Source of the DNA: Selaginella moellendorffii
Lineage: Eukaryota; Plantae; Lycopodiophyta
DNA length: 64,000 bases
Assembly: GCF_000143415.4 (NCBI RefSeq)
Contig: NW_003314271.1
Span: 930,001-994,000 of the forward strand
Direction: 5' to 3'
This document shows, in pieces, positions 5,024-64,000 of this stretch; position 1 is the first letter of the stretch; each line of letters opens with the position of its first letter. Position numbers and translations under genes: made by a program. A model generated the notes under the pieces. The model worked only from the letters and a program-made list of their open reading frames with translations. It made no database searches and was not told where the DNA came from.

Positions 5024-5800
5024 TGTTGCAAATGTGACCTCAAGTAGCAAAATATACTTGTCAACCAGTTCTTATAGACACTTTCTCTTACTGCCATGAC
5101 GACAAGTGGTTGGTACTGCTAGTTCATTTATCAGCCCCTCTTGTCCAAGTGTTAATAAACTAAATTTAGCATTTGTATTTGGTCAGATGAACATAAGGAA
5201 GAAATTCCTAAATGTCTATTTAGCCAAGCATACTTGGCCCGGTTTGTTAATTCTTTTTTGCTCTATTTTGCACTAGTTTGGCAAAAATCATCATGTATTG
5301 AGTCCAATTCTTTAATATTGCTATATGATAGCTTACCATGTCCACCAAATACCCTCACTATCATGCCTTATGTGTTGGTTTTGTTTCGGATGCATATACT
5401 ATTTATGGTAAGTGTCTAGATTCACCTAAAAGGCATATCTATAGAATGTAGAGAGTGTTATAAATTTTATGATGTTGTTCTTGCTCCTTGATTCATGATC
5501 TAACATCATCCCATATTTAGTAAGTTTTTATGCTTATTCCAAAGACTAACTCCTGGTACTAGGGGTGAAAGCCCAAAGCATGTATTCCTCAGAGGGGGGA
5601 TATAGGGGGTTTCAAATGTATATTAGGGATAATGGTTAGAATGTATGTCCGACCATTTAAGACATTAGTTTGGTTTCCATTAGGCTGTATCGCTCCTTGT
5701 TTTTTGTCTAACTTGGGTTTAAACCTAAGCTTCATGCTGCTTTAGTCAGTGGAGTACCCTCCTCCTCACATTAGGTCACTAGTATGCCAAAATCGTGCCA
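5024..5800 (+). mobile_element. 3' LTR of family A (truncated; right end approximate)
   Basis: Starts with TG immediately after the PPT; reverse-complement similarity to the other family-A LTRs. Confidence 0.7.
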
Positions 5801-9089: not shown

Positions 9090-10781
9090 ATGGCCGACGC
9101 TTCGGCAATTCTCAAGCTGCTAGATTCTTGCCGGAGCGTCCCCACTCTCCACGGATCGATCGAGCCCTCACTCGATCTCTCCGGCAATACATTCCTCGCC
9201 AACAAGCTGATCGAGGTCTATGGCAAGCTCGGCAGCTCCCGGCATGCCCGCCGCGTCTTCGATTCGCTCAATCGCCGGGACCAGTTCTCCTGGGACTTCA
9301 TGCTGCTCGCGCACACCAGGAATTTCGAGATCGCCGACGCCGCGGATCTCTTCCTCGCGATGCCCCGCAAGCGATTGATCTCGCACAACATCCTCCTCTC
9401 CGCCTACACCCGGGCCGGCGCGATCGAGGAGGCCCGCCTCCTCTTCGATCGCATGGCGCAGCAGACGCTAATCTCCTGGAACTCCATGCTTGCGGCCTAC
9501 GCCCACGCCGGGCACCTCGAGCGCGCCAAGAACACCTTCGATTCCATGCCCGAGAGGGATCTAATCTCCTGGAACACGCTCCTCTCCTCCATCGCCCAGC
9601 AGAGCGATCGCCCACACGACGCGATCGCCCTCTTCCACACGATGCCGCAGCACAATCTCCTCTCCTGGACCGCGATGCTCGTCGCGAATTCTCGCCAGGG
9701 ATCGCTCGACACTGCAAGAGCAATGTTTGAATCGATGCCACAGCGCGATGTTGTGGTGTGGACGACGATGCTCGTGGCTTATGGCGAGATCGGCGATCTA
9801 TCCAGCGCTCGCTGGTTCTTCGATCGAATGCCCGAAAGAGATCTAATCTCTTGCACAGCGATGCTAACAGCATATTCCCAAAACGGGCAAATAGATCAAG
9901 CCAAAGCACTGTTTAACTCGATGCCAAACATAAACATGGTTGCCATCACTGCGATGTTGGTTCTTAGCGGACAGACCGCATCTCTCGCGGATGCCGAGAA
10001 AATCTTTGACCGGGTCCCGGAGAAGACCCTAGTATCTTGGACTGCGATGCTCGCAGCATATGCCCAGCACGGGCATCTGGAGAACGCCAAGCAAATGTTT
10101 GATTCCATGCCTTTCCACAACACTATTGCCCACACCGCAATGCTCGACGGATATTCCCTGCGAGGGAATATGCTCGCGGCCGAGGAGATGTTTGATACCA
10201 TGCTGGAGAAGAACACTGTCGCGTGGACGTCTCTTCTCTCGGCAAATGCTCACAATGGAAACCTGCGAAGAGCCACGAAGGTTTTCTCGACAATGCCGGA
10301 GAGGAGTTGCAATACCTGGAGTGCGATGCTGGATGCTCTCACGTTTAAGGAGCGTTCTCTCCAAGTTTTTGATGTCTTCCACGGCATGAAAACGATGGAT
10401 TCGCCTGTTGATGCGAGCTTCACGTCGGTTCTCATTGCCTGTAGCCGGGAAGGCAAAGTCTACCTGGGAAGATCCATCTTTGTGTCGATCAGGATGGACT
10501 TTGAGCTCCACCACCGCAGGCAGCACTACGGATGCATGGTCGATCTTCTCGGGCGCGCTGGATATCTCAATGAGGCGCTGGAGCTCATCGGGAGCATGCC
10601 TTTTGTTCCGGAAGTTTGGGAGTGGACGTCGTTTCTATCCTCTTCTCGCCACCATAACAATTTCGCACTGGGCGCTTATGCCGCGACAAATGTTCTTCGT
10701 TTGAATCCCAAAAGCAATGCCTTTGCGCTCCTGGCAGAAGCGTGTTCCAAGCACCACCAAGACTTAGACTCTCCACTTTGA
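9090..10781 (+). CDS. PLS-class pentatricopeptide repeat protein with C-terminal E domain, no DYW (563 aa, intronless)
   Basis: Tandem ~31-aa repeats (A..F..MP.RD.ISW..ML.AY) followed by HYGCMVDLLGRAG and an E-type tail. Confidence 0.95.
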   Translation: MADASAILKLLDSCRSVPTLHGSIEPSLDLSGNTFLANKLIEVYGKLGSSRHARRVFDSLNRRDQFSWDFMLLAHTRNFEIADAADLFLAMPRKRLISHNILLSAYTRAGAIEEARLLFDRMAQQTLISWNSMLAAYAHAGHLERAKNTFDSMPERDLISWNTLLSSIAQQSDRPHDAIALFHTMPQHNLLSWTAMLVANSRQGSLDTARAMFESMPQRDVVVWTTMLVAYGEIGDLSSARWFFDRMPERDLISCTAMLTAYSQNGQIDQAKALFNSMPNINMVAITAMLVLSGQTASLADAEKIFDRVPEKTLVSWTAMLAAYAQHGHLENAKQMFDSMPFHNTIAHTAMLDGYSLRGNMLAAEEMFDTMLEKNTVAWTSLLSANAHNGNLRRATKVFSTMPERSCNTWSAMLDALTFKERSLQVFDVFHGMKTMDSPVDASFTSVLIACSREGKVYLGRSIFVSIRMDFELHHRRQHYGCMVDLLGRAGYLNEALELIGSMPFVPEVWEWTSFLSSSRHHNNFALGAYAATNVLRLNPKSNAFALLAEACSKHHQDLDSPL

Positions 10782-35799: not shown

Positions 35800-38700
35800 A
35801 ATGTTGTGCCATTTCTAGCCTCCTGATAAGAGTTGTATCACCATGTTTGTGTATAAGTGATATAATCTTAACAATTGCTCAATGTGGCCATCTTCCAATT
35901 GCTATCATATTATTCCATATGTGTAATAACTCTGCCCCAATCCAATCCTAATGTTTTTAATTCAAGGGTTTGTTTTAAATAGCTATTAATAATATTTCAT
36001 TATCTTATGCATTTTTTGGAGGCTTATGTGCATCATATCATAATCATCCATAAAAGAGATGTATTGACTTGTAAAATTCCTTATAGAACAAGTTTTCACT
36101 AATAAACCTTTTTAAATATCTAAATTTAATTAATGCCTCCATTTTTTCTGCTTCTAAAGTAAACAATTACTCCTTTATTTTTGATAGTTAGGTTTAAAAT
36201 GTAGAACTTTTTAATTGTTGCTTGATCAATATTTTGATAGCTTTTATATCCCTTTTAATGACTTATATTTTATTAGATCTTCTCCTTCACTTAGTCTATG
36301 TTTTTTTCATGGAGCTCACTGGTTATTTTAACCATGAATTTGTTAACTTCCTAGCTTTCTTTTATACAATAAATAGTGTATGTGTTTTCAAAGTGTTTTT
36401 TTGATAATGTAGGCTTCTTGATTCCACATCTTTAAGGATTAATATTGTTAACAAAACAGTGATCCAAGAAGTCTTTATACTCTATAGAAATATTTAGTTT
36501 CTCATTATTATGACATAAATTTGGTGACAAATAAAAATGTTTTATTTTTCTTTGATAAAATTAAAATCTCCAGTAACAATCAATGTTGAAGGTTACAAAG
36601 GGAGCTCCTTTAAGATCTCTTGAAAAAAACAACCCCTCTCTAATGAATAACTTACCAATGCGTATACATTTAGAGAGCATTAGTCATATATTTGATTTTA
36701 AATTAAACACATTACACTTGATCCCAGAACCAATATTATGTCTATTATAAAGTAACTCCCACAAACTTTAACCATTACTAGCATCCCCCTACTACATTCT
36801 ATTGTCAAGTTCCAAAAGTTTTTTTTTTTTTGCAAACTTATACACTAAATTCACACTTGAAAGACAATGCTTTTGCATACATAAAAAATCATTTGTGATA
36901 TTCCTTATGATGTTAATAGAATTATCATACATACTTACTATCACGAAACTCGTTATGCATGTTTTTGTAAAAGGCATGATATGTCCATGTAACACACGTG
37001 GTTTTCACCCTTTATTTTATGGTGATTTACCATAGGATAACCACAAAGTGGAATCTAAACCCTCCATATGCCATATGCCATATATCACATATCCAATGGA
37101 CAGCAAAGTGGAACTCGAGTTTTAAGGCCACTCATTGGGCCACTGAATGAAGATACGGAGCTAAACTCCCAAACTTGCAGCTGGGTCTAAGTCCAAGTTC
37201 CATACCATGTTAATTAGTAAATACCCATATCTTTATGTTAGACCACTGGTATATTGAAATAGTGTCAAACTTTATTTGGGTCCGTTTTGCATGCTAGTCT
37301 TGGTATTAGAATGTTGAATGCTCTAAGACTGTTTCTACATCACTCCATACTCCTGTCTCTTCACTTTTTGGGCTGAATGTTCAAAAATCACACCATACTC
37401 CAGTTCTTTCACTCATTAAGTTGGATGCAGAACAAAGATACGCATGCAAATAAGAGTTAAATTATGCCTTAAGTTAGTCGGCCATGCCTGACTTACCCAC
37501 TATCCCTACTATATATTTGGAAACTTTGATAGCCCCCCCTCCTTGAGGAACATATGCTTTGGGCTTTCAACTTTAACTACCCTTAGTACTAGGAGTTAGT
37601 CTCTAGAACTAACTTGAAACTTATTAAATATGGAATGTCTCTAGATTGTAAATATGAATACGAGACCAACACTATTGTGGTTAGAATAATCTTTACATTC
37701 CGTAGATATGCCAAATAAGTAGATCTAGACACTTTCTATAAATAGCATTTGGAACCAAATGGTACTAACAGAAGGCATATGATAGTGAGGGTGTTTGGCA
37801 GACACGGTAAATTATCATTTGGCAAATATTGAGAGACTAAGAAAAATTTTACGAGGGTTCCCAACATTAGTAAGTGCAAGTCAATGAATGAGTTTCTCTA
37901 ACCAAGTCAAGTATGTTTGACTAATAGCACTTAGGAATTCCATCCTGATGCTCATCTGGTCAAGTGCATACGTAAAGACTAGTTTCTTAATTAGCTTAGG
38001 CGAAGACTGAAAAAAAAGGTTTAGCAATACTGCTTGCCGTCGTGGCAATAAAGAAAGAATATCCAAAAAAACTAGCCGATAGATAACTTTTAATACCTGA
38101 AGTCACTTTCGCGACAGTCCACATCATAACTTGGAAAATGAGAAAGTTTAGAAATTAGATAAAATATGAAATACCTACTCATCTTTTTAGGCTTACTTTG
38201 AATGCCCCTAATATCGATGCTAATAGGATCCATGGTGCATTCGAAGGAAAATGACTTGAAATAAACTTTTGCTACATACATCATAAGCTCATACATCCAG
38301 TTGGGGTCGTTTAGTAAGATAAAAATGACATAGTTAACTTCGAGTAAAAATGTTTATAACAAGAAGAATATATCACACATGTGGTCGAGTGTGAGAAAGT
38401 TTCTAGTCCTTGACTTTCCTATCAATATTTGAAGACTATTTGGAAAGTTGAAGAGAATGAAATTTGCAAGGGCTTTTATATCTTTCAACACTAATGGTCG
38501 AACTAGTGTTGTATTTCTATGTTCATGTCTTCTTTTGTGAAAGATGTCAGCAATTTACTATAGAAGCCAATGAAGACACCCATAATGCCTCGATGTGTTA
38601 TTGGGAAAACAAGACAAACCTATAGAAGAGTCATATGAATAAAAAAGCTACCATCTTATGATTGTTTGGTAGTGAAATTAGAGCTTGATCTTGGTTATCA

Positions 38701-39608: not shown

Positions 39609-42600
39609 TGTCAAGACCCCCAACAAAATCAAGACTCGAAAATGCAGAAGACAAAGAGAAAAGCTAGTGAAAACGAAAAAAAAACCTTAAACTGGCGTTG
39701 ATTCAAATTGTGGAGAAATGGAACAAGGCTAACCTATATATACTATAGGTTGATGAAGTTCCACCACTCTTGGATCGGAGACGGCCTAAATATAGCTAAG
39801 GTCGAGGAGGCACCACGTCATCATCAAGAATGTGGCTCGAGATTTAGGAATCGTACAGGAAATCAGAGAGTCAGGAATAGGGAAGTGTCTTGAAAGTCAA
39901 GAATATGGTCTGTAGGTCAGGAATCCAGTGAGAGTCAGGAATGTGGCAAGAATTGGGGGATTCCTGACAGCACCCCCTCCTCAAGAACGAGTGGAACGAG
40001 GACATGAATGAGAACGAAGAGGAGGATGAGATGGGCGGCGAGGGATAGAAGATGGAGAAAAAGAATGAGGACTGGGATGAGAAAGATAGTGGTGGTGGAA
40101 GTCCTGAACAAGTCAGGAGAATGAATTAGGTTGTCCGCAGGTTCCCAAGTGCATTTCTCAAGTCCATAACCCTTCCAATCTACCAGATAGTAGAGGTTAG
40201 ACCGTGAGATCTTGGAATCAAGGATGTCTTGAACCTCGTACTCACACCCATCCTCGAGCTGCACTGGTGGAGGCGGAGGAATGACCCAATTTGGTATAGG
40301 ACTGGGAATATAAAGCTCAAGGAGAGAGGAGTAAAAAACGGGGTGAATTTGATATGAGGAAGGAAGTGCAAGGCAATAAGTGATAGGATTAATGATGGCA
40401 GTGATAGGGAAAGGACCGAGGCATTTGAAATTAAGTTTGGGACATGGCCTAGTGGTGGACATATTTCACCTGAGGAGCCAGACTTTATCCTCGATATTGT
40501 AAGGGGGACAATCTTGACGATGGACATTGGCAAATGTTTTGTGAGATTCCTAAGCACGATGGAGGTGGAAGGAGATGGAGTTGTGGATTTCCTAGAGGTT
40601 GGAGATAAATGCCTCAGAGCGGGGATTTGAACGAGAGGATTCGGATGGAAAAGGAAGTGAGAGATTGAATTGGGGATTTCGGCTAGAGTTCGCAAAGAAG
40701 GGGGAAACTTGAAGGGAGGAGTGAACAGAATTGTTATAGGAGAACTCAGCAAGGGGAAGGATATCGAATCAGTCATCCTGATGATAGTTGATAAAGCCCC
40801 TCAAGAATTGTTTCAATGTCTGAATTGTTCACTCAGACTGTCCATCACTTTGAGGATGATACGCCGAAGAGAGGTTGGCCTTCACTCCAAGAAACTGCAA
40901 GAACCATTGCCAGAAATGAGAGACAAACTGATGTCCCCGATCCGAAACCACATCTACAGGAATCCCATGAAGTTGGAAAATTTCCCTGAATACCAGTTTT
41001 GCCATGTCCTTGCCCGAAAACTCCTTGGTACACGGCAGGAAGTGTGCCATCTTTGTGAAGCGATTCACCACGACTAAAATGCTGTTGAAGCCTCCATAAC
41101 TCGGAAGATCACTCAAGAAATCCATGGAGATGGATTCTCAAGGACCTAAAGGGACCGGGAGGGAACGAAGCAAACCTGAAGGAAGGTGGCAAGGTACCTT
41201 ATTCCGGGTGCAAGTGTCACAGGAGGTAACAAAAGCTTTGATGTAGTCATCCATGTGAGGCCACCAAAAGTCCTGTGCAACCAGCTCATAGGTTTTCACA
41301 ATGCCGAAGTGACCAGTAATCGGGCTATTTTGGCACGCCATCAGGACCAACCTTCGAGCATCACCTTCAGGAACGTAAAGCTGCTCCCCACGGTACAACA
41401 AGCCATCTAAGAACTTGAACTCGTCAAATCGCTGGTAGTTGGGAGTCACTGGGTATCCAGCTTGAAGATGGGGGAAAATGTCGCTGGTGAGGTCGTTGGA
41501 TTGAAGATTGTTTCTGATCGCATCCATCAAGGAGGAGTCCTGAGGGACCAGGGAAATTGCCATAACTTGAAGCCGATTAGGACTAAGGATAACCTAATCC
41601 TGTTGATTGAAGGCAAGATTACAAGGCCTGAGACTGAGATAGGTGCGCCTTAAAAGAGCATCAGGAAGGCCTTGAAGCTTTCCAGGTCTGTATTTGATAA
41701 TAAAGTCAAATTGACTTAGGAATTGTGCCCACCTTGCCTGACAACAGCTCAAAACTCGGGAAGTGGCAAAGTACTCGAGATTTTTATGATCTGTCCAGGC
41801 CATTGTTTGATGGCTTGCCCCCTCCAAGAAACGACGCCACTCTCCAAAGGAATCCACGATGGCAAGGAGCTCCTTATTGTGGATTTCGTAATTGATCTCC
41901 GCAAGCTAGAATTTCTGAGAATAAAAAGCGATCGGATGAAATTCCTGATCTGCTCTGAGTTGAGACAACACAGCACCGATGGCAAAATTGGAAGTGTCAG
42001 CCTCGATAAAGAAAGGTTGTGAGGGATCAGTGTGGATCAAGACGGGAGCAGAATTGAAGGCCACCTTGAGTGTGTCGAAGGTTTGCTAGGCAGCAGTAAA
42101 CCAAGAGAAGGGAACATCCTTGTGAGTGAGATGCGTGAGAGGAAGGACAATGTCAGAGTAGTGATCAATGAATTTGCAGTAAAAGTTGGCAAAGCCAAGG
42201 AAAACCTGAACGTCCGACATTGATTGTGGAGGCTCCCATTCAAGAATAGTTTTGACTTTGGCAAGATCCATCATGATACCTTTAGAAGTGACAATGTACC
42301 CAAGGAACTCCACAGACTCCTGATCGAAAGAACATTTCTCAAGCTTTGCATATAGGCCATGTTCCCACAGCTTCACCAGCACCTTGTGCACATACTCGTC
42401 GTGCTCCTCTTGAGTTTTTGAGTAGATGAGGATGTCGTCGAGGTAGACAATCACCATCTGATCAAGAAACTCCCGAAAGACGTTGTTCACCATGTGTTGG
42501 AAAACTGCTGGAGCATTTATCAAGCCAAATGGCATGACAGTGTACTCGAAGTGGCCATGGCGAGTTTGGAATGCAGTTTTCCATTCGTCGCTAGGCCGGA

Positions 42601-44873
42601 TTTGGATTAGGTTGTATGCTCCACGGAGGTCGATCTTGGTGAAGAAGCGGGCACCACCGAGGTGTTCTAACAGGTCCGAGATCAAGGGCAACAGATAACG
42701 GTTCCGAATAGTCAGCATGTTCAAACCTCAGTAGTCGATGACTAGCTACAAACTCCCATCCTTCTTCTTGACAAAGAAGACAAGCACTCCAGTCGGGGAG
42801 TACGAATGCTAAATGTACCCCGAGGCAAGATTCTCATCCACATACCCTTTGAGGGCCTTAAGCTCGGACGGAAATAACCCTTAGATAAGCCCCCACGGAG
42901 GTGATGCTCCTTCCTATAAATCAATGGGACAGTCATAAGGTTAACGAACAAGCAGTGCACTAGCTTTTTTCTTGTCAAACACATCCCCAAAATCATGATA
43001 CTTCTCAGGAAGACTGACAAGAGAAACATGCAAAGCAAAAAGGAAAACAAGTTCTTCATGAAGGAGTTCTTTCATAGTGATTGTGGAGATAGGAGGAGGC
43101 GTACGACTAAATGGAATGATGAGACGAGGATACTGTCTAGTGTAAGATGGAAGAGAGGGAAAAGAAGAGGGTGAAAACTTCATAGAGTCAGGAACAGAAC
43201 CTCAATTTGAGTTGAGGGAACTTTTTTTGAGTTGGACTCGATGAACAGTAGGGGAAGCTGTGGGAGATGGTGACATGGGAGAGACGAGCTGTAATTCCTT
43301 CCAACATATCTGAGGTTGGTGTAGTTGGAACCAAGGAAGGCCAAGCACCATAGAGGAGGACTTGCTGTTGATGATGTTGAAGGTGATATCGGTGACGGTG
43401 GACCTGATGTGTACTCAAACGGGCAACGTTTCCCTAAGGCCAGAAGATGGAGACACAAAATGTCTGCCGATGCCTTCAACCCTCAGATCCTGTATGGTAG
43501 GAGAAAGAGGAACATGATGTCGGGCAGCAAAGTTTATGTCCATGAAGCAGGAAGTTGCAGCCGAGTCCAGTAGCACCAGAGCCTTGAGTCCTGATTGTTC
43601 GGTGAAAGAAAGGAGACATAGGATGAGGAAGTTGCGGGAATTGGTGGTGGCTTTGATGAAAGGTGGTGAGGAGCTTGATAAAGAAGAAAAGTGATTTTTA
43701 TTCGGGGAGTCCAAATAGACAGCTCCTATTCTGTTTGGACAGGGTCGTTTCCCAACTACAATAGAGGTGGACCTTGATGCAGAGTGAACTCGAGCAGTCG
43801 GGGAGGCTTCTTGGGACACACAGCTGCTTTGTGATTAGGATCAACATAATAGAGGCAAAGATTATGAGATATTCGACATTGCTTCTCAGTAGGACTCAAC
43901 TTCCCTTTGTTGAGTCGGGGAGTACCAGAAATATCCATTGGGACCGGAGTAGTAGGTTTGGGAGTATGCCCCGAAGACTCAAGCTGGGATTTCTAAATCT
44001 GGGATGGGAAAACGGCGGTGCGGCAACTTTCTTGACGACGTTCAAAGAGACGATTGTCACATCAGCTCTAGAACCGCGACCCCTTTCATGCTCTTCTCTA
44101 GGAGAGGAGAAAACCATGACAAAGCTGCACATCGAGCAACGTCCCGATCACACCGATTTGAGACTTGGGAGTGGGGTACCGCTGATGTTGAAGTGCGAAA
44201 ATCAGCTCCATCTGGTTTAGGAATCCGTGAAGCTCTGAACACTTGCTTGAAAATTTCGCCGGGAAACTCACCTTCGGTTCAAGAACTTTGCTGGGTCCTT
44301 GAGCCGAAAGTGAAGCAAGCTCCTGCTGCATGCAAAGAAGGGTTGCCTTCAGCTCAGTATTCTTAGATTGGATTTTTGTAAGGACTTCGGCAAGAAATCA
44401 GGACAGCTTGAAGACTCCATCGGCAAAGAAGAAAGAAAAAGGGGGAAAAAGACAAAGACAATCAAACAATCAAAATGAGCTAAAGCAAAAATGAAAAAAA
44501 CAATCTGAATTAAATTGTCGAGACCCCCAACAAAATCAAGACTGGAAAATGCAGAAGACAAAGAGAAAAGCTAGTGGAAATGAAGAAAAGGCTTTATACT
44601 AATGTTGATTCAGATTGTGGAGAAATGGAACAAGGCTAACCTATATATACTATAGGTTGATGAAGCTCCACCACTCTTGGATCGAAGACAGCCTAAATAT
44701 AGCTAAGGTCGAGGAGGCACCACATCATCAGGAATGTGGCTTGAGATTCAAGAATTATACGGGAAATTAGAGAGTCAAGAATAGGGAAGTGTCTCGAGAG
44801 TCAAGAATGTGGTCTGCAGGTCAGGAATCTGGTGAGAGTCAGGAATGTGGCAAGAATTGGGGGATTCCTGACA
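39609..44873 (-). mobile_element. Full-length Ty3/Gypsy chromovirus (Tcn1/Tf1-sushi-like) with decayed gag-PR-RT-RH-IN-chromodomain; LTRs 39609-39969 and 44516-44873; TSD CACTC
   Basis: TG..CA LTRs of ~360 bp; cactc at 39604-39608 and 44874-44878; PPT next to 39970; [50 protein letters not shown]. Confidence 0.97.
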
Positions 44874-45257: not shown

Positions 45258-45544
45258 ATGCTTTATTTCGTTAAAGTGGAACTTTTCATTATCCCACTTA
45301 TGGTGTGTGGCCACATGCCATTTTTATAACAACAATAAAAAATTGAAGTTTTAGCTTTATAATTTATAAATTAAAAATTTTTCATATGATTTTGTGTTAT
45401 AATATTGTGAAATATAAAAAATAAATTAAAAAACTGATAGAAATATTAATAAATATTAATTAAGTACTAGGAAATGGCATGTGGACACATGCTAATTAAT
45501 GTCCCACTTTACTGAATAAGTTCCACTTTAACGAAATAGAGCAT
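45258..45544. mobile_element. 287-bp MITE with 27-bp TIRs and a 4-bp TSD (CTTT)
   Basis: atgctttatttcgttaaagtggaactt ... aagttccactttaacgaaatagagcat; empty site present in the inverted paralog at ~27285. Confidence 0.92.
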
Positions 45545-52800: not shown

Positions 52801-54604
52801 CTTAATCTATGTTTTTTTCATAGAGCTCACTGGTTATTTTAACCATGGACTTGTTGACTTCCTAGCGTTTTTTATACAATAATTAGTGTATGTGTTTTGA
52901 AAGTGTTTCTTTATATTAATGTAGGCCTCTTGATTCCACATCTTTATGGATTAATATTGTTAATAAAACAGTGATCCAAGAAGTCTTTATACTCTGTAGC
53001 AATATCTAGTTTCTCATTATTATGACATAAATTTGGTGACAAATAAAAATATTTTGTTTGTCTTTGATAAAATTAAAATCTTTCATGACAATCAATGTTG
53101 AAGGTTACAAAGGGAGCTCCTTTAAGATCTCTTGAAAAAAACAGCCCCTCTCTAATGAATGACTTATCAGTGTATACACATTTAGAGAGCATTAGTCATA
53201 TATTTACTTGATCCCATTATGTCCATTATAAAGTGACTCCCACAAACCTTTAACCACTATTAGCATCCACCCACTACATCCAATTGTCAGGTTCTAAATT
53301 TTTATTTTCTTTTTTTTTTTTTGAACTTATACACCAAATTCACACTTGCAAAACAATGCTTTTGCACACAAAAAAAATCATTTGTGATATACCTTATGAT
53401 GTCAATAGAACTATCATACCTAGGCAACATGTATATTATATACTCACTATCATGAAATTTGTTATATATTTTTTTGTAAAATGCATAATAAGTCCATGTA
53501 GCATACATGGTTTTCACCCTTTATCCTATAGTGATTTATCATAAGATAACCACGAAGTGAAACCTAAACTCTTCATGTGCCACATGCCACATGCCACATG
53601 TCCAATGGACAATAGAGTGGAGCTTGAGTTTCAGGGCCTTGGGCCATTGAATGAACGTACGAAGCCAAACTCCCAAACTTGCAGCGAAGGAGCAAAGGAA
53701 CTGGAGTATGGTGTGACTTCTGAGCATTTGGCTTAAAGAGCGAAGGGATAGGAGCACAGAGCGATGTAGGAACAGTTTTAGAGTATCTAACATCCCAATG
53801 CTAAAACTAGCATCCAAAATAAAGCTAAACGAAGTTTAGAAATATTTCAAAATACCGATGACTTAACGCAAGGATATGGGTATTCCACCAACTACTATGG
53901 TATGGAACTTAGGCTTAGACTCAAACCGGATGCAAGTAAGAGCTAAACTATGCCTCAAGTTGGTTGGCCATACCTGACATGCCCACTATCCTTACTATAC
54001 ATTTAGAACCTTTAATAACCCCCCTTCCTTGAGGAACACACACTTTGGGCTTTCACCCTTAGCCACCTTTAGTACCAAGAGTTAGTCTCTAGAACTAACT
54101 TGAAACTTACTAAATATGGAATGTTTCTAGATTGCAAATTTGGACATGGGACCAACACCATTGTGGTCAAGACAATCTTTATATTCTGTAGATATGCCAA
54201 ATGAGAAAATTTAGACACTTTCATAAATAGCATTTAGATTCAAATAATACTAACATAAAGTGTATAATAGCAAGGGTGTTTAATAAACATGGTAAACTAT
54301 CATCTAGTGAATATTGAGGGACTAAGCTCAATATCACGAGGGTTCCTAACACTAGTAAGTGCAAGTCAATGAATGAGTTTTTCTAACCAGATCAAATATG
54401 CTTGATTAATAGCACTTAGAAATTATGTCCTGATACTCATTTGGTCAAGTGTATATGTAAAGACTAATTTCTCAACTAGTTTAGGCAGAGACTGAAAAAT
54501 GGGTTCAACAATACTGACCTCTTGCTGTCATGGTAGTAAAGAAAGAATATCTAAAAGGACTAATTGACAAATAGCATTCGATACCTAAAGTCATATTTGT
54601 GGCA
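48797..54604 (+). repeat. Direct segmental duplicate of 32165-38116
   Basis: Colinear pseudogene, integrase remnant, AT-rich LINE remnant and an identical LTR insertion junction. Confidence 0.92.
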
Positions 54605-57600: not shown

Positions 57601-59374
57601 GTTAGTACCTCAACTTCACACCTTCTCCATCTAACAATTTATTCCAAATGCTAACGAATAAACCAACAAGCTATAGCAAGTGAATGCTATAACCTTTTCT
57701 AACAGTTTATGGGCAAACTCTCAAGGAAGTAAGGTATCAACTCAAGCTTAGCATAATAGACCACCATCGAGAATCTAGTCAAAGCTACTTCAATGCTACT
57801 ACTTGCAAATAAATTAACTTCATTATCAACCACTTTGTGGTTAATCATTGGTAACCAAACAACTTTGTAAACACATTACTCATTATCATATGGATATGAT
57901 ATAAATATTATAATGACTTGATCATTAATCAAGCAATACCATAAGCAACACCTATATCACTACTACAAAGGTTTATATGAGTATCAAATGCCAACTCGAT
58001 TCGACAAAATGCAATATAAATGTCACACTCCACCAATAAGGATTTATAATACCAAACACCACTAACTTTTGTTCACAACATAGTAAGGTTCCCCTGAAAA
58101 GAATTGAGCATTGCAATCTAAGTTTTCAATAACAAGCCTAAACAAAATGGTTTAGCACTTCATCGCTATCCATTCCACAACTCACCACTTGTAAGACCAT
58201 AATTTCCAACATGCATCAAAATAGGGACTTTTGATTGCATGATGTAAGTATGAACAATGAATTAACACTTTGTTGTAAATCATCTCTCCAAAAAGAGAAA
58301 ATGATTTATGTGTTTGATCCTTCGTCCCTAATAACTCTTTTTTTGGACTCAATTTTGACCAAACCTCAAGCTTGCTTTATCCACTTATAATAATGCCTAG
58401 AAAGGATCCACTAATTCTATGCTAAACAGCTACAGACTAGCATATTCACCACTCATAGCAAACCCAGGGGAGGTTTACTTTTACCTATAGTACATAGAAT
58501 AATTTATGGTAACCACTAATAGGCTAACATTAATCTTGCCAACTCAAAGTGTAACCTTGAGTTGCTAATGTGCCTCATTCATGAGCCATAGCTCAAACTC
58601 ATACAAACGGAACATTTTTAATCCATTTTATAAGCCAAAGCACAAGCTCATATAATATGGTACAAAAAAGTAACCAAAATCCATACCCAAGGAAGGATTG
58701 CAAAGTCATAGTACCCAAACGTATACCCACTCAGATCATCATTTTCATCTCTGCATATGCAACAAGACCAATTGCCTAATCTCATTGGATAATGCTCACT
58801 AAGACTCATTCTCCGGTACCAAATATAGTATATGTGGTTTTCACCCTTTATCTTATAGTGATTTACCATAGGATAACCATGAACTGCAATCTAAACCCTT
58901 CATATGCCATGTGTCACATGCCACATGTCCAATAGACAGCAGAGTGAAACCCAAGTTTTAAAGCTTTGGGCCACTGAATGCAGGTATGGAGCCAAACTCT
59001 TAAGCTTGCAACCAAGGAACAAAAGAACTAAAGTATAGTGTGACTCCAAGCATTCAGCCCAAGGAGTGAAAGGACAGAAGCACGGAGCAACGTAAAAATA
59101 ATCTTAAAGTATTCAACATCCCAATGCTAAGATTAGCACGCAAAATGGAGCTAAATGAAGTTTGGTGCTATTTCAGTATATTAGTGGCTTAATGCGAGGA
59201 TATGGGTACTCCACCAACTAGTATGGTATGGAACTTGTATTTATACTCAACCTAGACGCAAAATAATGATAGGCACACAAGCGGGAGCTAGAATATGCCT
59301 CAGGCTGGTCGGCCATATCTAACCCTTAGTATCAGGAGTTAGTCTCTGGAACTAACTCAAAACTTACTAAATAT
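53497..59374 (-). mobile_element. Family A LTR retrotransposon: 3' LTR 53497-54604, PPT 54605-54617, heavily decayed interior, PBS 58810-58821, 5' LTR 58824-59374 (interrupted)
   Basis: Two direct LTRs; ctttcccccctt PPT; TGGTACCGGAGA PBS; faint integrase echo (LAVIDLLYEM) at ~56400. Confidence 0.85.
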
Positions 59375-59816
59375 AAGCTCTATTTCGTTAAAGTGGGAAT
59401 TGTCATTATCCCATTTGTAAAATAAGGTTTCCAAACCTTTATATAGTATATAAATATAACAAAATTCAACTGCATTGAGGCACATGCCATTTTATTTTAA
59501 ACAAGGAAATGTCTACTCAATCACTTCTCCTCCCCCTGCCACTGCTTCACCTCTCTCTTCTCCTTGTCATCGTCGTCCAATTTCTTTCCATCCTTTTAAT
59601 ATTGGCTCAGTTGCTCTGAGTCTAGGTGGAGCCCAAGTCCCCATTCAATCTTTACTTTCCCCTTATTAATAAAACAACTTCGTAGACTTCCAATAACATG
59701 CTGTAACACTTCTAGTATAATGCAAATCCTCTTAAAGAATTGTCTTTTAATATTAATACAATGGCATGGAACCCCATGCCATAATAAGTTACATTTTTAA
59801 ATAAATACATGCCATC

Positions 59817-60701
59817 TCAGACTGTTATTTTTTGCCTCCAACGCCTATACAATAATCTTGGAATTTCATCACTCTCCACACTATCAGGATTTAAACCCAA
59901 TAGTAATGCCATCTCTTCTCTAATACGTCCACGCTCATGTTCAGTGGTCGAAGAACCCATCCGGTTAAGCAGATTATGGAGATGTGGATAGTCCTTGGCT
60001 AGACAATATACATGCCATAAATGATGACTGGTGTCTGTCCGATCAAATGGCTTCTGATATACCGTTCCATCTGCCATTTGTTTGATTTCTGCAGCCACCT
60101 CCTGGACTGGCCGGTTCTCTATCACCATCGCTCCAAGCCGTTTTGCAAGGTCCCCCAGAACATACGGTTTCTTCTCCCTAGTTTCCATACTGCAAGAGAT
60201 GGGGTGCACTGCATATGTGTGCGTGTTCGCTGCAGTTTTAATCGCCGAGTCATCGATGATGAGGATTTCACTTGACCTAGCAGTCCGGTTCATCACTACA
60301 GCCTCTGGCTTGACGAAGATGGGCTTGCTACCCCTCACATGGACCATAGTCAAGCAATCCTCCTGCGTTAGGAGAAAGTCAAATGGTAATATTACTCGCG
60401 TCTGATCGTGCATCATCTGTAGCAACGTTAATGCATTGTGGCACATCATGGATGTCCAAACTCCCAATTGCAAATTGAACCCGGCCCTCTGTTTTAAGTG
60501 TCGCATGGTCATTATTAGATCCCGCAGTTTCTCCCGTGTGATTAATGTGAATCTGTCTCTTTTGACCAACTTGCGACCGCAGGCTTTGGAGGGTGCAATG
60601 ACATTCGAGGACGAGCCACGCTCATGGGAGAAAAGGACACCGTTCAGATAAAAAATGATACAGTACCTTCGCCGTGACTCTGAAATGAAATGCGTCAGCA
60701 T
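59817..60701 (-). CDS. FCP1/NIF-like HAD phosphatase domain (catalytic Asp appears lost)
   Basis: IIFYLNGVLF (DLNG/DLDET-like), GVWTSM, LTQEDC, FVKP, ILIIDDS; probably the last part of a larger spliced gene. Confidence 0.65.
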   Translation of the reverse strand: MLTHFISESRRRYCIIFYLNGVLFSHERGSSSNVIAPSKACGRKLVKRDRFTLITREKLRDLIMTMRHLKQRAGFNLQLGVWTSMMCHNALTLLQMMHDQTRVILPFDFLLTQEDCLTMVHVRGSKPIFVKPEAVVMNRTARSSEILIIDDSAIKTAANTHTYAVHPISCSMETREKKPYVLGDLAKRLGAMVIENRPVQEVAAEIKQMADGTVYQKPFDRTDTSHHLWHVYCLAKDYPHLHNLLNRMGSSTTEHERGRIREEMALLLGLNPDSVESDEIPRLLYRRWRQKITV

Positions 60702-61333
60702 AAAAAATGGTACAAGTCAATTTTACCATCTACAATATTAGCGAATGGTGCTCCCGATGGTCGTTGAGAGGGTTTTGGTCGAGGAAACGTGAAGGGCGGA
60801 AATACTCTCCTCTGCAATGTGGGGTCAATCGCATCCGATGGCATGTGGGCATATGCCATTTCAGCTGTAGACTCTGGTACAACTGGCTCAACAGTGGCAT
60901 GGGGTGGTTCCGATGGCGTGTGATCACACGCCATTTCAGCTGGTGCCTCCGTTAGCAAAGTGGACATGATCGAACAGGCAGTAGGGGCGGTGTAGGGAGG
61001 TTCCAACGGCGCGTAGTCAGACGATTGGGCACACGTTGAGTCCGTTGGAAATGAGGATACGACCGGCTCGGCGGCTGGGGCGGCCTCATGCGGGTCCAAT
61101 GGCGCCTGGTCACCGTCAGTTGGATACGTGGACAAGATTGACTCAGTGGTATGGGCAGCATCAAGTGGAGCGTGGTCAGCTTGCTTGGCGTTGATATGGA
61201 TAGTAGCCTCCACCAGCTCTGATGACTCTTGCAGGCAAGTAGAGTCCACTGGCGGATCCATATGCATGTCCAAATATCTCCTTTCGATTGAGATGGTATC
61301 CTCCCGTGCTACTAAAAACAAACTCATTAGCAC
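60695..61333 (-). CDS. Pro/Ala/Thr/Glu-rich low-complexity exon(s) with about five degenerate repeats
   Basis: DHAPLD/DQAPLD/DYAPLE/DHTPSE/AHMPSD units; 212-aa open frame. Confidence 0.5.
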   Translation of the reverse strand: MLMSLFLVAREDTISIERRYLDMHMDPPVDSTCLQESSELVEATIHINAKQADHAPLDAAHTTESILSTYPTDGDQAPLDPHEAAPAAEPVVSSFPTDSTCAQSSDYAPLEPPYTAPTACSIMSTLLTEAPAEMACDHTPSEPPHATVEPVVPESTAEMAYAHMPSDAIDPTLQRRVFPPFTFPRPKPSQRPSGAPFANIVDGKIDLYHFLC

Positions 61334-61570
61334 ATTGAATCGACTATACTGTATTTACCATCAACTGCTATTGAGGAACTAGGACCGATATCACTTGGGC
61401 GCACTGCTGATTCTGAAGGATTGGACATACGTTTCGACCCTTGCTTGGCACTATCCTTCCTCGACACTAAAGGCTAGAGTTTGTAAATTCAACTAAATAA
61501 TCTCTACTTACCATTTGCTCTGCGACCTACATGGACAATGTTAGAAATGGTAAAAGGAATGGGTGTACTA

Positions 61571-63954
61571 TTATTTACCTGATGGTTTGTCTTGTATGAC
61601 CTTCCTCCGCTGCTCTTTGGCCACCTCAGGCTGGCCATCATCGTCATCATCGTCGTCGTCGTTATTGTGATCGTCACCATTGTGAGGACCATCCAAGTCC
61701 TCTTCGTCCTCCTCTTCTTCGTCCTCCTCTTCTTTGTCCTCCTCTTCGTCCTTCTGCTCTTCCTGCTCATTATCTTTCTCTGACTCCTCATCCCCCTCCT
61801 GCATTTCTTCCATAGGCTGCTCAGGCTGGATGGCTTGTTCTTCCAGGACCATCTTGGGAAAATCATCTGGCCGAGTCTCCATCTCAAAATACAAGACATC
61901 CATAGCCTGTTTTAGTGCGTGACCTAGGACCGTATCCTCACCCGACTGTCTTAACATGGTTTCTGCACGTTCTTGCACCCTTCGAAGACGACGAGATGAG
62001 AAAAACGTGGCCCTGACTTGAAAAGCATCCCTCATCCATTGTACCTCTCCATTGAGATTGGGGAAGGGGAGTCCGCCATAGGAATCTGAGTCAGAGGTGG
62101 TGACTGCTTGCTTTCACTCAGCCCTTGATCTGCAATGAATGGCATGAGCACACACGCCATAACCGCGAGGCATTACCTATCATCTTTTCGTTGCCCTTCT
62201 TCCTTTTCGAATCAAACGCCTCTAATCTTGACAACTGTCTAACGTGCTTTCGCTTTTTATGACCACTGTCAGTTTGAGCTTGGCTGGTGCTTGCCTGTTT
62301 TGCCTTTGAAAAAGTGTCTCCTGCAAGGAATGGCATGAGACCACACGCCATTGCAAATATAATTTGTACCTCCTTTTTTCCTATTGCTTGTCTGTTTGTC
62401 CTTCTTCGATGCGCCACCAGTGCGCTTTTCAGTCCTCGTGTCTGAATATTCACAACGATCTATAATCAAAATGGCGTGAGGCCTCACGTGACCTTACCTT
62501 GTGCAGGTTGTGAGCTCGGCCCAACATGGGTATCTTCAACAGTAGCTGTTAACGCCGTTTCAGCATCTAGGGGTGGCCACGCTCCTGCATACAGAGCTTG
62601 TGAGATAACATTTAAACTTAAAGTGTGTACTCACTAGGTTCGCAGAGAAGATACTGTTTTTCTTCGGCAACTGTAATTATATGCTCCATTGAAGTCACCT
62701 CTTCAATGGAGTTTGTCACCGCAACACACGGGACACCCTTGAGTAGTGCGGCTCGAAAGAATAGTCTGCCGCAGTTGTACTCGACAACGCATTTGCCCTT
62801 GGAGTCGGAAGCATGTGACCCACCCGCTATTGCGTTGAAGACCCAGCTGAGCATTTCCCATGTTGCACTTGGAGCTTTCTTTGGATTCGAAAGCTCCATA
62901 GCCGTCTTCAGTTCCTCAGGCACGGGTAAATTGACCTCCCTCAGATCAATTCGATTGGCCTTGTCGAACGAAGCTGGGAAGTCACTCCAGTCCCACTCTG
63001 CTGCAGGACCAATAACAAGGGCGAGTGTGAAGATGCGGACATTCGTCGGTATCTTCTTCTTAGCCATTATCCCATGGATCTCCCGCATCTCCTTGCCTTT
63101 CAACCGAGCCTTCACCTCGTTCAAGGCCTTCTAGAACTTGTGATAGGATTCGGAGTCGTAGATCATATAGTGGACTGAAGATTCCACCTCCGCAAGTCCC
63201 ACCATTAAGTCAATGATGGAGCTGACTTCGTCTGCATGAGTGATCTCCTCGTTTGTGAAGTCCATCACACAAAAGATGTTCTTGACCTGCTCATCTCCAC
63301 GGGAAACAATGCTCCTCCACCTTTGATCCTCATCCGAATTCAAGTATACCCGGTAAGGTTCTCGATAGGCCTCTGCTGCGGGGTCGAGCTGTTTCTGAAG
63401 CCGGCGGTCGACATCTTAATGAAATTTGGATACTGATCCAACTTCTCAGCTTTACTTTTCGTGGCATCCCACAGCAGATTGATGAACTTGGGGGCCCCCT
63501 TCACGTACTCGTCGATGTCTTCATTTGACAAATCCAGCGCTTCCATCATCTCTTGCGTGGTGTCGATGCTCACCCTCTCCACAGCCACTTGCTCAAAGAT
63601 CCAATCCTTCAATAGCGCACGAGCTCTTAGAGTCGTGCACAAGTCCTCGTATGTCACAATATAGCCGGGAGTCATTTTGGTCTTGTTGAAGACTACCTCA
63701 CCACGTAGAAGAGCATTAGCCACTGTCAGAAGGTCGTCGTCGTCTAGAGACCGCGAGAAATGCAAGGCGTTGAGCTTCAAATCATTGGGCTTCCAGCCGT
63801 CCTCCACACCCATTGAGTTTGGCAACTCCCTGTCATGGTACCTCCTCAGCACATCTACCCATTTGTCAAAAACAACTTTTGTCGCGAGTAGAATGTTATG
63901 GATACTGAGTGTGTCATTGACCCCCAGTGTTTTCGAGAGAAGACTCAAGAATTC
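61571..63954 (-). pseudogene. Multi-exon gene of unknown function with an acidic tract, slightly decayed (in-frame stop at 63131, frameshifts near 63345 and 62050)
   Basis: Long ORFs; exons 62498-62584, 62370-62459 and 62177-62320 join in frame through phase-1 GT-AG introns 62585-62634, 62460-62497, 62321-62369 and 62130-62176. Confidence 0.7.
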
Positions 63955-64000
63955 CTGCAATGGAAATGGCGTGAGGCCACATGCTATGCCACATGCAACG

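Follow-up and report, generated by a model that had tools for sequence, protein, structure and literature searches.

A 22-bp palindrome, ATGGCRTG-N6-CAYGCCAT, recurs within a 64,000-nt stretch of DNA from the lycophyte Selaginella moellendorffii (NCBI RefSeq assembly GCF_000143415.4, contig NW_003314271.1, positions 930,001 to 994,000; equal to GL377575.1:930001-994000). This whole stretch is called "the window" below, and all coordinates are positions within it. Copies of the palindrome lie near the ends of a family of transposons with terminal inverted repeats (TIRs) and also inside very short candidate introns of the gene that the large member of this family carries. The sequence tips the balance, by a modest measure, toward the interpretation that the palindrome is a cis-motif of this single Selaginella transposon family, probably a binding site for a dimeric protein, and that it doubles as a 3' splice module wherever it reads in the sense direction of the gene.

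In the mechanism that we propose, a protein encoded by the element, probably acting as a dimer, would bind the palindrome. Sites that point with the gene would each occupy the 3' part of a short spliceosomal intron. In this position, the conserved half of the palindrome, changed from CACAY to CTCAY in what would be the direction of its evolution, would supply the branch point at position -16 or -18 relative to the acceptor; the T/C-rich flank would form the pyrimidine tract; and (T)TGCAG or TATAG would form the acceptor. The intronic palindrome would then be removed from the mRNA. Sites that point against the gene would be carried in frame within a repetitive, probably disordered, coding segment. 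An arrangement in which a transposon's own introns carry its family palindrome as an apparent branch point would be unusual, and the case for it made here comes from one decayed copy. To our knowledge, no transposon has been described whose own introns use the motif of its end repeats as a branch-site module.

A palindrome confined to one transposon family

A pattern scan of the window finds exact copies of the palindrome at 59761, 60913, 62139, and 62330, when 0.00 are expected. With up to 3 mismatches allowed, copies are also found at 45300, 45474, 59469, 60838, 62471, and 63966, giving a total of 10 when 0.71 are expected, a number reached in 0 of 100 shuffles. All 10 fall within one TIR transposon family, which is represented in the window by a 298-bp miniature inverted-repeat transposable element (MITE) and by a large element that starts at 59375; none lies in a host gene or a host intron of the window. 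A similar restriction is seen for the better conserved half of the palindrome together with its first flanking T (CAYGCCATT), which occurs 11 times when 1.1 are expected, with 10 of the 11 inside the MITE or the large element. An earlier note on this DNA, made from the sequence alone, had linked the palindrome to the TIR family, placing it both at the family ends (45300 and 45474 in the MITE, and 59761) and in the element's own candidate introns. These observations are borne out, and to them are added two copies in coding sequence (60838 and 60913) and the degenerate copy at 59469, which the note had overlooked.

The motif is the full 22-bp palindrome: copy 60913 is perfect, copies 63966 and 60838 each have 1 mismatch, and copy 62471 (62492-62471 on the minus strand) has 3, all of them in its distal half. 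To judge from these copies, the ancestral form is ATGGCGTGTGG/CCACACGCCAT, and the R/Y variants are the result of CpG decay. Each of the variants ATGGCATG, ATGGTGTG (T, at 45300), and CATGCCAT represents a single transition at the one CpG that is present per half, and the ratio of observed to expected CpG is 0.72 in the large element vs. 1.12 in a PPR gene of the window. The R/Y positions are thus best read as the neutral decay of a methylated repeat and not as compensatory change.

The left part of the large transposon occupies 59375-64000, where it runs off the window, and it contains one long gene on the minus strand. Its left terminus is placed at 59375 by comparison with empty copies of the flanking sequence. 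The 53 nt before 59375 (59322-59374) are the end of another repeat, copies of which are present at 2399, 5513, 37579, and 54065; copies of this flanking repeat continue with GGAATGT at 37631 and 54117, while here the TIR begins instead. The TIR (GCTCTATTTCGTTAAAGTGG...; 59377-59416, plus strand) is common to both ends of the MITE. At 59377-59398, its 22-mer differs from the two MITE ends by 0-1 mismatch (3 matches vs. 0 expected), and by repeat comparison the similarity to the left MITE end extends to 59416.

The MITE, a non-autonomous relative of about 290 bp (~45258-45544), has 27-bp TIRs that are 96% complementary. Beyond the TIRs, a weaker similarity of the two arms continues through the palindrome, one copy of which is present in each arm (45300 and 45474). 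TIR similarity spans only ~27-80 bp. The flanks of the MITE fit either CTTT, as a 4-bp duplication, or TG...CA termini with CCTTTA/TCTTTA (6 bp, 5/6 match). Terminal inverted repeats that are common to long and short members mark the family as a class II TIR family. Within this class, the CACTA (En/Spm) superfamily was considered and rejected: the termini read A(T/A)GCTYTATTTCG, and the element is not a CACTA element because the CACTA/TACTA strings found nearby belong to the flanks, as is seen in paralogous empty sites. A Helitron 3' end, which would have a hairpin about 10 nt ahead of a CTRR terminus, lack TIRs, and sit at an AT insertion site, was also rejected; the MITE has clear TIRs, the intronic copies end GCAG or TATAG, and only the right MITE copy ends CTAG. 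A scan of metagenomes for the TIR of the family gave 0 matches.

The repeat that abuts the large element belongs to another family, with at least 5 copies in the window (58823-59374, 53496-54117, 37579-37631, 5513-5566, and 2399-2451), all of which end in ...AACTTAYTAAATAT. The insertion point of the large element coincides exactly with the end of one of these copies. Between the two longest copies (53496-54117 and 58823-59374), the similarity is 76-89%.

The gene of the large element and its candidate introns

Translation of the minus strand, together with models that track the reading frame, yields one coherent gene that enters the window at 64000 and ends with a stop codon at 59817-59819, ~440 nt from the terminus. 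The gene model has ten candidate GT-AG introns of 38-65 nt, four of which contain the palindrome. From 63124 to the stop codon, the gene is stop-free after the removal of nine GT-AG introns.

Three of the palindromic introns are complete, and all are on the minus strand. The first, 62497-62460 (38 nt), contains the degenerate palindrome 62492-62471, with donor AAG/GTAAGG (the slash marks the splice junction), CTCAC at -18, and acceptor TATAG. The second, 62369-62321 (49 nt), contains the exact palindrome 62351-62330, with donor GAG/GTACAA, CTCAT at -16, and acceptor TTGCAG. The third, 62176-62130 (47 nt), contains the exact palindrome 62160-62139, with donor TAG/GTAATG, CTCAT at -16, and acceptor TTGCAG; for this intron, alternative acceptors are possible at 62104 and 62086. 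The fourth is the 3' part (63955-64000, minus strand) of a tenth intron whose donor lies beyond the window. It contains palindrome 63987-63966 (1 mismatch) and CTCAC, with the A at -18, followed by acceptor TTGCAG and by an exon that is open for 204 codons from 63954 onward. The splice borders reported earlier are present as described: the three complete introns start with GTA and end with AG, the acceptor AG of the fourth is at 63956-63955, and the gaps between the palindromes (62139, 62330, 63966, and 62471) and the AG are 7, 7, 9, and 9 nt, respectively. Just upstream, in gene sense, of the 63966 palindrome, at 63988-64000, the distal half is found in tandem duplicate (GCATGTGGC twice), and a further overlapping copy may lie past the edge of the window.

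The statement that each tiny intron carries the palindrome holds for these four but not for the six other tiny introns of the same gene, also on the minus strand. Intron 62634-62597 (38 nt) has GTGAG...CTCAC arms of its own and must be removed for the upstream frame-0 open reading frame (ORF) to connect with the following exon in its sole open frame. Intron 62044-61980 (65 nt; donor GAG/GTACAA, CTCAT at -18) restores the frame after the 85-nt exon that comes behind the 47-nt palindromic intron. The frame-preserving model also includes introns 61578-61527 (52 nt), 61511-61467 (45 nt), 61358-61312 (47 nt), and 60726-60680 (47 nt). These four, within 60680-61578, have branch-like YTNAY motifs at -15 to -18, reading CTAAC, TTTAC, CTAAT, and CTGAC. 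Faint echoes of the palindromic introns are seen at two of the palindrome-free introns (the GTGAG...CTCAC arms, 25 nt apart, in 62597-62634, and AATGGATGAGG ... CTCAT in 61980-62044); these could be decayed copies of the same module or could be due to chance.

Several lines of evidence bear on whether these segments are real introns. Along the sense strand of the element, the string AG/GTA is found at only 8 places. Three of the 8 precede the three complete intronic palindromes by 8-18 nt (p about 6e-5), and the donors of two further introns (65 nt and 52 nt) account for two others. Nine of the ten candidates contain a YTNAY motif whose A falls between -15 and -18. Where an intron contains the palindrome, the sole YTNAY is the CTCAY within it, at -16 or -18, a spacing equal to that of CTAAC, CTAAT, and CTGAC in the other introns. 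The small exons measure 99, 90, 144, and 85 nt; two of them, 62596-62498 and 62320-62177, can be read without a stop in a single frame, the one that the lengths of the introns require. In their GT-AG borders, donor consensus, branch motif 15-20 nt from the acceptor, and preservation of the frame upon removal, the segments have the features of U2-type introns, and it is quite probable that they were functional introns in an intact ancestor of this copy.

The earlier note pointed out that removal of the introns at 62321 and 62460 joins the flanking exons in one open frame, and removal of the introns does keep the frame open. Taken alone, this argument is weak because a 111-aa ORF reads straight through 62369-62321 and 62176-62130, because an ORF-maximizing model does without the 49-nt intron, and because removal of a single 531-nt gap also keeps the frame. 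The ORF-maximizing model calls for a 33-nt donor variant (62492) and for intron retention, both judged less likely than the AG/GTA donors. After the 47-nt intron, the frame closes at 37 codons unless the 65-nt intron (62044-61980) is also removed.

The 531-nt gap also figures in an alternative explanation, in which these segments are not introns. In this case, 62036-62617 would be a non-coding spacer or an internal regulatory region between two ORFs, containing three binding sites and GT and AG dinucleotides that are merely fortuitous. A stop at 62618 closes the upstream ORF, the long ORF that comes next contains an ATG at 62035, the gap equals the sum of 198 intron nt and 333 exon nt, and the small "exons" are of low complexity and rich in lysine, arginine, and serine (K/R/S); stop-free alternatives also exist. 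However, the three AG/GTA donors at the right distance, the branch-like motif at -16/-18, as in the other introns, and the fact that each small exon is open in the exact frame set by the intron lengths all argue against a spacer, which we consider quite unlikely.

The small size of the introns is a separate matter. Published figures serve as the baseline for intron length, and, since in-window reconstruction over-split the multi-intron genes, only the single-intron host genes of the window were usable for comparison; their introns are 69 and 61 nt. In S. moellendorffii as a whole, introns have a mean length of 110 nt and a median of 59 nt (PMC3729371, Table 3), and the length distribution resembles that of fungi (PMC6157073). 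Because such lengths are the norm for the Selaginella host, introns of 38-65 nt need no special explanation. Thus, of the earlier emphasis on tiny introns, the part that stands is that the introns look genuine, as judged by AG/GTA, YTNAY, and frame, but their size is not in itself noteworthy.

The copy of the gene that is present in the window has decayed. Its upstream coding part (63125-63954, minus strand) has a frame shift near 63340-63420 and an in-frame stop codon at 63131-63133; therefore, this is a dead copy. Farther downstream, at 61600-61800 (minus strand), the gene contains a long acidic tract, rich in Asp/Glu, that arises from 15-nt-periodic, GA-rich repeats (repeat family D1). The last exon (59817-60679, minus strand) encodes a C-terminal domain of ~286 aa, which has no detectable relatives, and then the stop codon. 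By eye, the pattern of this domain recalls FCP1/NIF-type HAD phosphatases, with the DxDxT replaced (YLNGV ... IIDDS), an impression that finds no support in Pfam or the PDB.

Database searches with the ORFs of the element were uninformative. No match was found in Pfam with seven ORFs, in a word-indexed protein collection with the 204-aa and 294-aa ORFs, or in a PDB sequence search with an ORF of the element, and an exact look-up of the 294-aa and 154-aa ORFs found no called gene. A HMMER search with the 168-aa ORF against 1.84 billion cluster representatives yielded two weak hits, and the Pfam domains of both are unrelated to transposons; the one that was examined is a bacterial Ig-repeat protein, which looks spurious. 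Neither the spliced nor the unspliced form of the product is matched by a protein of any origin in this search. Single-sequence AlphaFold models of two ORFs had predicted local distance difference test (pLDDT) scores of 39.5 and 35.5, too poor for a fold search.

A shared module at the 3' ends of the introns

The four palindromic introns are alike over 31-33 nt only, consisting of the palindrome and the 9-11 nt that lead to the AG. In local alignments, the likeness ends exactly at the acceptor AG, and the 5' parts of the introns and their flanking exons are unrelated. A tandem duplication of exon-intron units is excluded because the exons are unrelated and because the similarity stops at the AG. 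No target-site duplications (TSDs) or inverted repeats flank the palindromic introns. The nearest relative of the intron modules is the module in the right arm of the MITE (GCCATTTCCTAG).

The earlier note raised, as one of two possibilities, that an introner-like process had seeded these introns. If so, a portable module of ~31-33 nt (palindrome, pyrimidines, and AG), derived from the end repeat of the family, would insert into transcribed DNA and recruit a nearby GT upstream; the four introns would represent independent insertions, and similar ones might exist in host genes. The features that would fit such an origin are the end of the shared unit at the acceptor AG with unrelated sequence on the 5' side and in the exons, the kinship with the right MITE arm, and the fact that the motif alone carries nearly complete 3' splice signals. 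However, all four introns are found within one gene of the element, neither a TSD nor a TIR flanks them, and there is no known mechanism for moving a 31-nt half-module. Because the window has no copy in a host gene or host intron and because a survey of 3,325 genomes (PMC9860276) turned up no introner in land plants, an introner origin is conceivable but unsupported, and we regard it as unlikely. Its broader form would make the end-repeat palindrome a portable 3' splice module that repeatedly generates short introns in the element's gene and possibly in host genes, and thus a first introner-like system in a land plant, enabled by the short-intron splicing of Selaginella; this is rather improbable.

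Alternatively, the modules could have arisen by the copying of introns and have no function at the level of DNA. In this case, the four 3' modules would derive from one ancestral intron through duplication or gene conversion and would be kept as splice signals; the ends of the element would resemble them through having been built from the same sequence or converted by it. Two derived characters, CTCAY and, on the other strand, GAG, do set the four intronic copies apart from the rest, and conservation is strongest in the half that contains the splice signals. However, the same oriented motif is present in both arms of the MITE (where it is placed symmetrically), near the left terminus, and in a coding repeat, and a splice function cannot explain its conservation at these places. 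In addition, the distal half of the palindrome plays no role in splicing. Intron copying without a DNA-level function is therefore a doubtful explanation, with a low probability.

Orientation of the motif

The family motif is conserved asymmetrically and so can be given a direction. All 10 oriented copies retain CAYGCCATT, made up of one half and the T next to it, a longer T-run is present in 7 of the 10, and every degenerate position falls in the half opposite CAYGCCATT. The conserved side was consequently taken as the "head" of the motif. In the MITE, the heads of copies 45300 and 45474 point inward from each end, with the T-rich side inward. In the large element, the heads of copies 59469, 60838, and 60913 point inward from the left end. 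The first of these, a degenerate copy (59469-59490, plus strand), is 95 nt inside the left terminus, with both its conserved half and its T-run facing inward; copies 60838 and 60913 are ~1.5 kb inside the left end. Past the stop codon (59817), in non-coding sequence that extends to the left terminus, lies the exact copy 59761-59782. The direction of the four intronic copies is opposite to that of the left-end copies, as expected of sites that are mirrored about the center of the element and that would belong to its right side, beyond the window. Taken together, the orientations are as expected for directional DNA sites arranged as mirror images in a TIR element, and the gene appears to work around these sites.

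How the gene would do so depends on the direction of the site. Heads in gene sense coincide with the 3' ends of introns and read CTCAY, as is the case for 4/4 intronic copies vs. 0/13 other half-sites (Fisher p = 4e-4). The two heads in gene antisense (60838 and 60913) sit in a coding tandem repeat of two 75-nt units (60834-60954, plus strand), with the T-rich side, GCCATTTCAG, in the plus direction and thus antisense to the gene. Within the coding exon, these palindromes are read in frame as AEMA(C/Y)(D/A)H(T/M)PS (AEMACDHTPS and AEMAYAHMPS), and the segment that holds them is rich in proline and alanine. On the plus strand, GCCATTTCAG, which looks like an acceptor, closes each 75-nt unit; no donor is obvious upstream of it.

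A possible RNA hairpin and possible control of splicing

A palindrome within an intron can also be viewed as an RNA hairpin, as the earlier note suggested. The predicted folding energies are -16.2 kcal/mol (z -1.7) for intron 62130-62176, -14.5 kcal/mol (z -2.5) for intron 62321-62369, -7.5 kcal/mol (z -1.2) for the third complete palindromic intron (38 nt), and -11.7 kcal/mol (z 0.0) for the partial intron at the window edge. The mismatches between the arms give G-U on the sense RNA in copies 62139 and 62330 but A-C in copy 63966, and are thus inconsistent with respect to strand and without a compensatory pattern. A search of Rfam with 59000-64000 yielded no match at the gathering score and only two sub-threshold chance hits. 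Since the arm differences are CpG transitions that lack compensation and since the z-scores are modest, nothing supports a selected RNA hairpin, and this candidate was set aside.

A more elaborate version is autoregulation of splicing. Here, the branch point and the acceptor would be hidden by the hairpin or by a protein that binds it on the pre-mRNA, and a product of the element would control intron retention and hence its own dosage. The branch A and part of the acceptor region are indeed paired in the predicted folds of -14.5 and -16.2 kcal/mol, and retention of 62369-62321 or 62176-62130 would place the ATG of the palindrome in frame with the next exon. However, besides the strand-inconsistent CpG transitions in the arms and z-scores of only 0 to -2.5, the 62471 copy has lost most of its distal arm, and no RNA-binding domain is known for the element. 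Autoregulation through the hairpin is thus very improbable.

With regard to the reading frame, the palindrome starts with ATG (ATA in the 63966 copy) and has a G at +4, with a purine at -3 only in the 62330 copy (62160-62139, 62351-62330, and 63987-63966, minus strand). These three intronic palindromes share the register of the downstream exon, and retention would give an in-frame start or read-through; given the few independent events, this is not significant.

Weighing the interpretation

The motif, its restriction to the family, its orientations, the layout of the splice signals, and the frame-preserving model are read directly from the sequence; binding by a protein, splicing itself, and the direction of evolution are inferred. 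Several points weigh against the interpretation of the palindrome as a protein-binding site that doubles as a splice module. First, only one copy of the family's gene has been read, and it is decayed, with a frame shift and a stop codon in its upstream part. Second, the product of this gene has no homologue in Pfam, the PDB, the word-indexed collection, or the 1.84 billion representatives, and no DNA-binding domain or transposase is recognized in the 4.6 kb of the element that lie within the window. Third, stop-free models that omit intron 62369-62321 exist. Fourth, the putative branch A is paired next to the loop of a hairpin of -14 to -16 kcal/mol, which should hinder splicing and not help it. 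Fifth, the 59761 copy is ambiguous and does not fit the orientation rule cleanly. Finally, the four intronic modules may be copies of one another, and so the 4/4 statistics do not represent four independent events.

Comparison with known transposons and introns

Binding sites in repeated form are present near the ends of well-studied plant transposons. For the 12-bp TNPA sites of En/Spm, binding is best in inverted pairs, and Ac contains AAACGG sites. Subterminal motifs are also found in Lemi1/Emigrant, which are plant TIR transposons (PMC1636448). The Selaginella palindrome resembles such subterminal repeats in being a short family motif that is present near both ends, mirrored, of an inverted, dimer-like form, and common to an autonomous-type element and a MITE. 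Unlike these repeats, copies of the palindrome reach at least 4.6 kb inward, to positions inside a coding gene, in introns as well as in an exon, and their binding by a protein is putative.

Splice signals in transposons are likewise known. The maize elements Ds1 and dSpm are "mobile introns", in which splice sites in the transposon ends let the element leave host transcripts. As in these elements, transposon end sequence in the Selaginella family contains what appear to be usable splice signals. However, in Ds1/dSpm the whole element is spliced from a host gene, whereas here the motif is in the element's own gene and contributes an acceptor-side module only.

Introners, or introns derived from transposons, are known from Micromonas, Aureococcus, fungi, and dinoflagellates (PMC9860276, PMC12130899, PMC11282704). 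Like introners, several introns of the Selaginella gene share near-identical sequence that is related to a DNA transposon and would supply splice signals. Unlike introners, only the 3' 31-33 nt and not the whole intron are common to them, the intron borders lack TSDs and TIRs, and the four instances are all in the transposon's own gene, with none in the host genes of the 64-kb window.

Among lycophyte DNA transposons, GingerRoot of Selaginella lepidophylla has TIRs of 100-150 bp, mostly TA...TA termini, and an integrase-like transposase (PMC6839031). The family described here is likewise a lycophyte DNA transposon, and its MITE can be read with TG...CA termini and the 6-bp flank repeat (5/6 match), though the 4-bp CTTT fits equally. 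TG...CA termini with 6-bp TSDs are a signature of integrase-type elements, GingerRoot among them. Its TIRs, at ~27-80 bp, are much shorter than those of GingerRoot.

Other contents of the window

The window also contains an intronless PPR ORF (9090-10778), which is the exact product of a called gene on GL377575.1 (GCA_000143415.2); a pectinesterase gene with one intron of ~70 nt; an NTF2-like gene; and a kinase fragment. A Ty3/gypsy fragment at 39935-42724 (minus strand) encodes a reverse transcriptase, an integrase SH3-like domain, and a chromodomain.

Implications

If a single intron of a dead element gave rise to all four modules, they are a minor curiosity of one transposon family. If the interpretation as a binding site and splice module is correct, then a transposon would keep protein-binding sites deep within its own coding region by having the spliceosome remove them from the transcript, and one 11-nt half-site would do two jobs, serving both as a DNA site and as a branch point. 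A motif of the end repeat would then already hold most of a 3' splice site, providing the kind of raw material that models of introner origin call for, in a land plant without known introners. With its median intron length of 59 nt, Selaginella lends itself well to testing the minimum of sequence from which an intron can be made.

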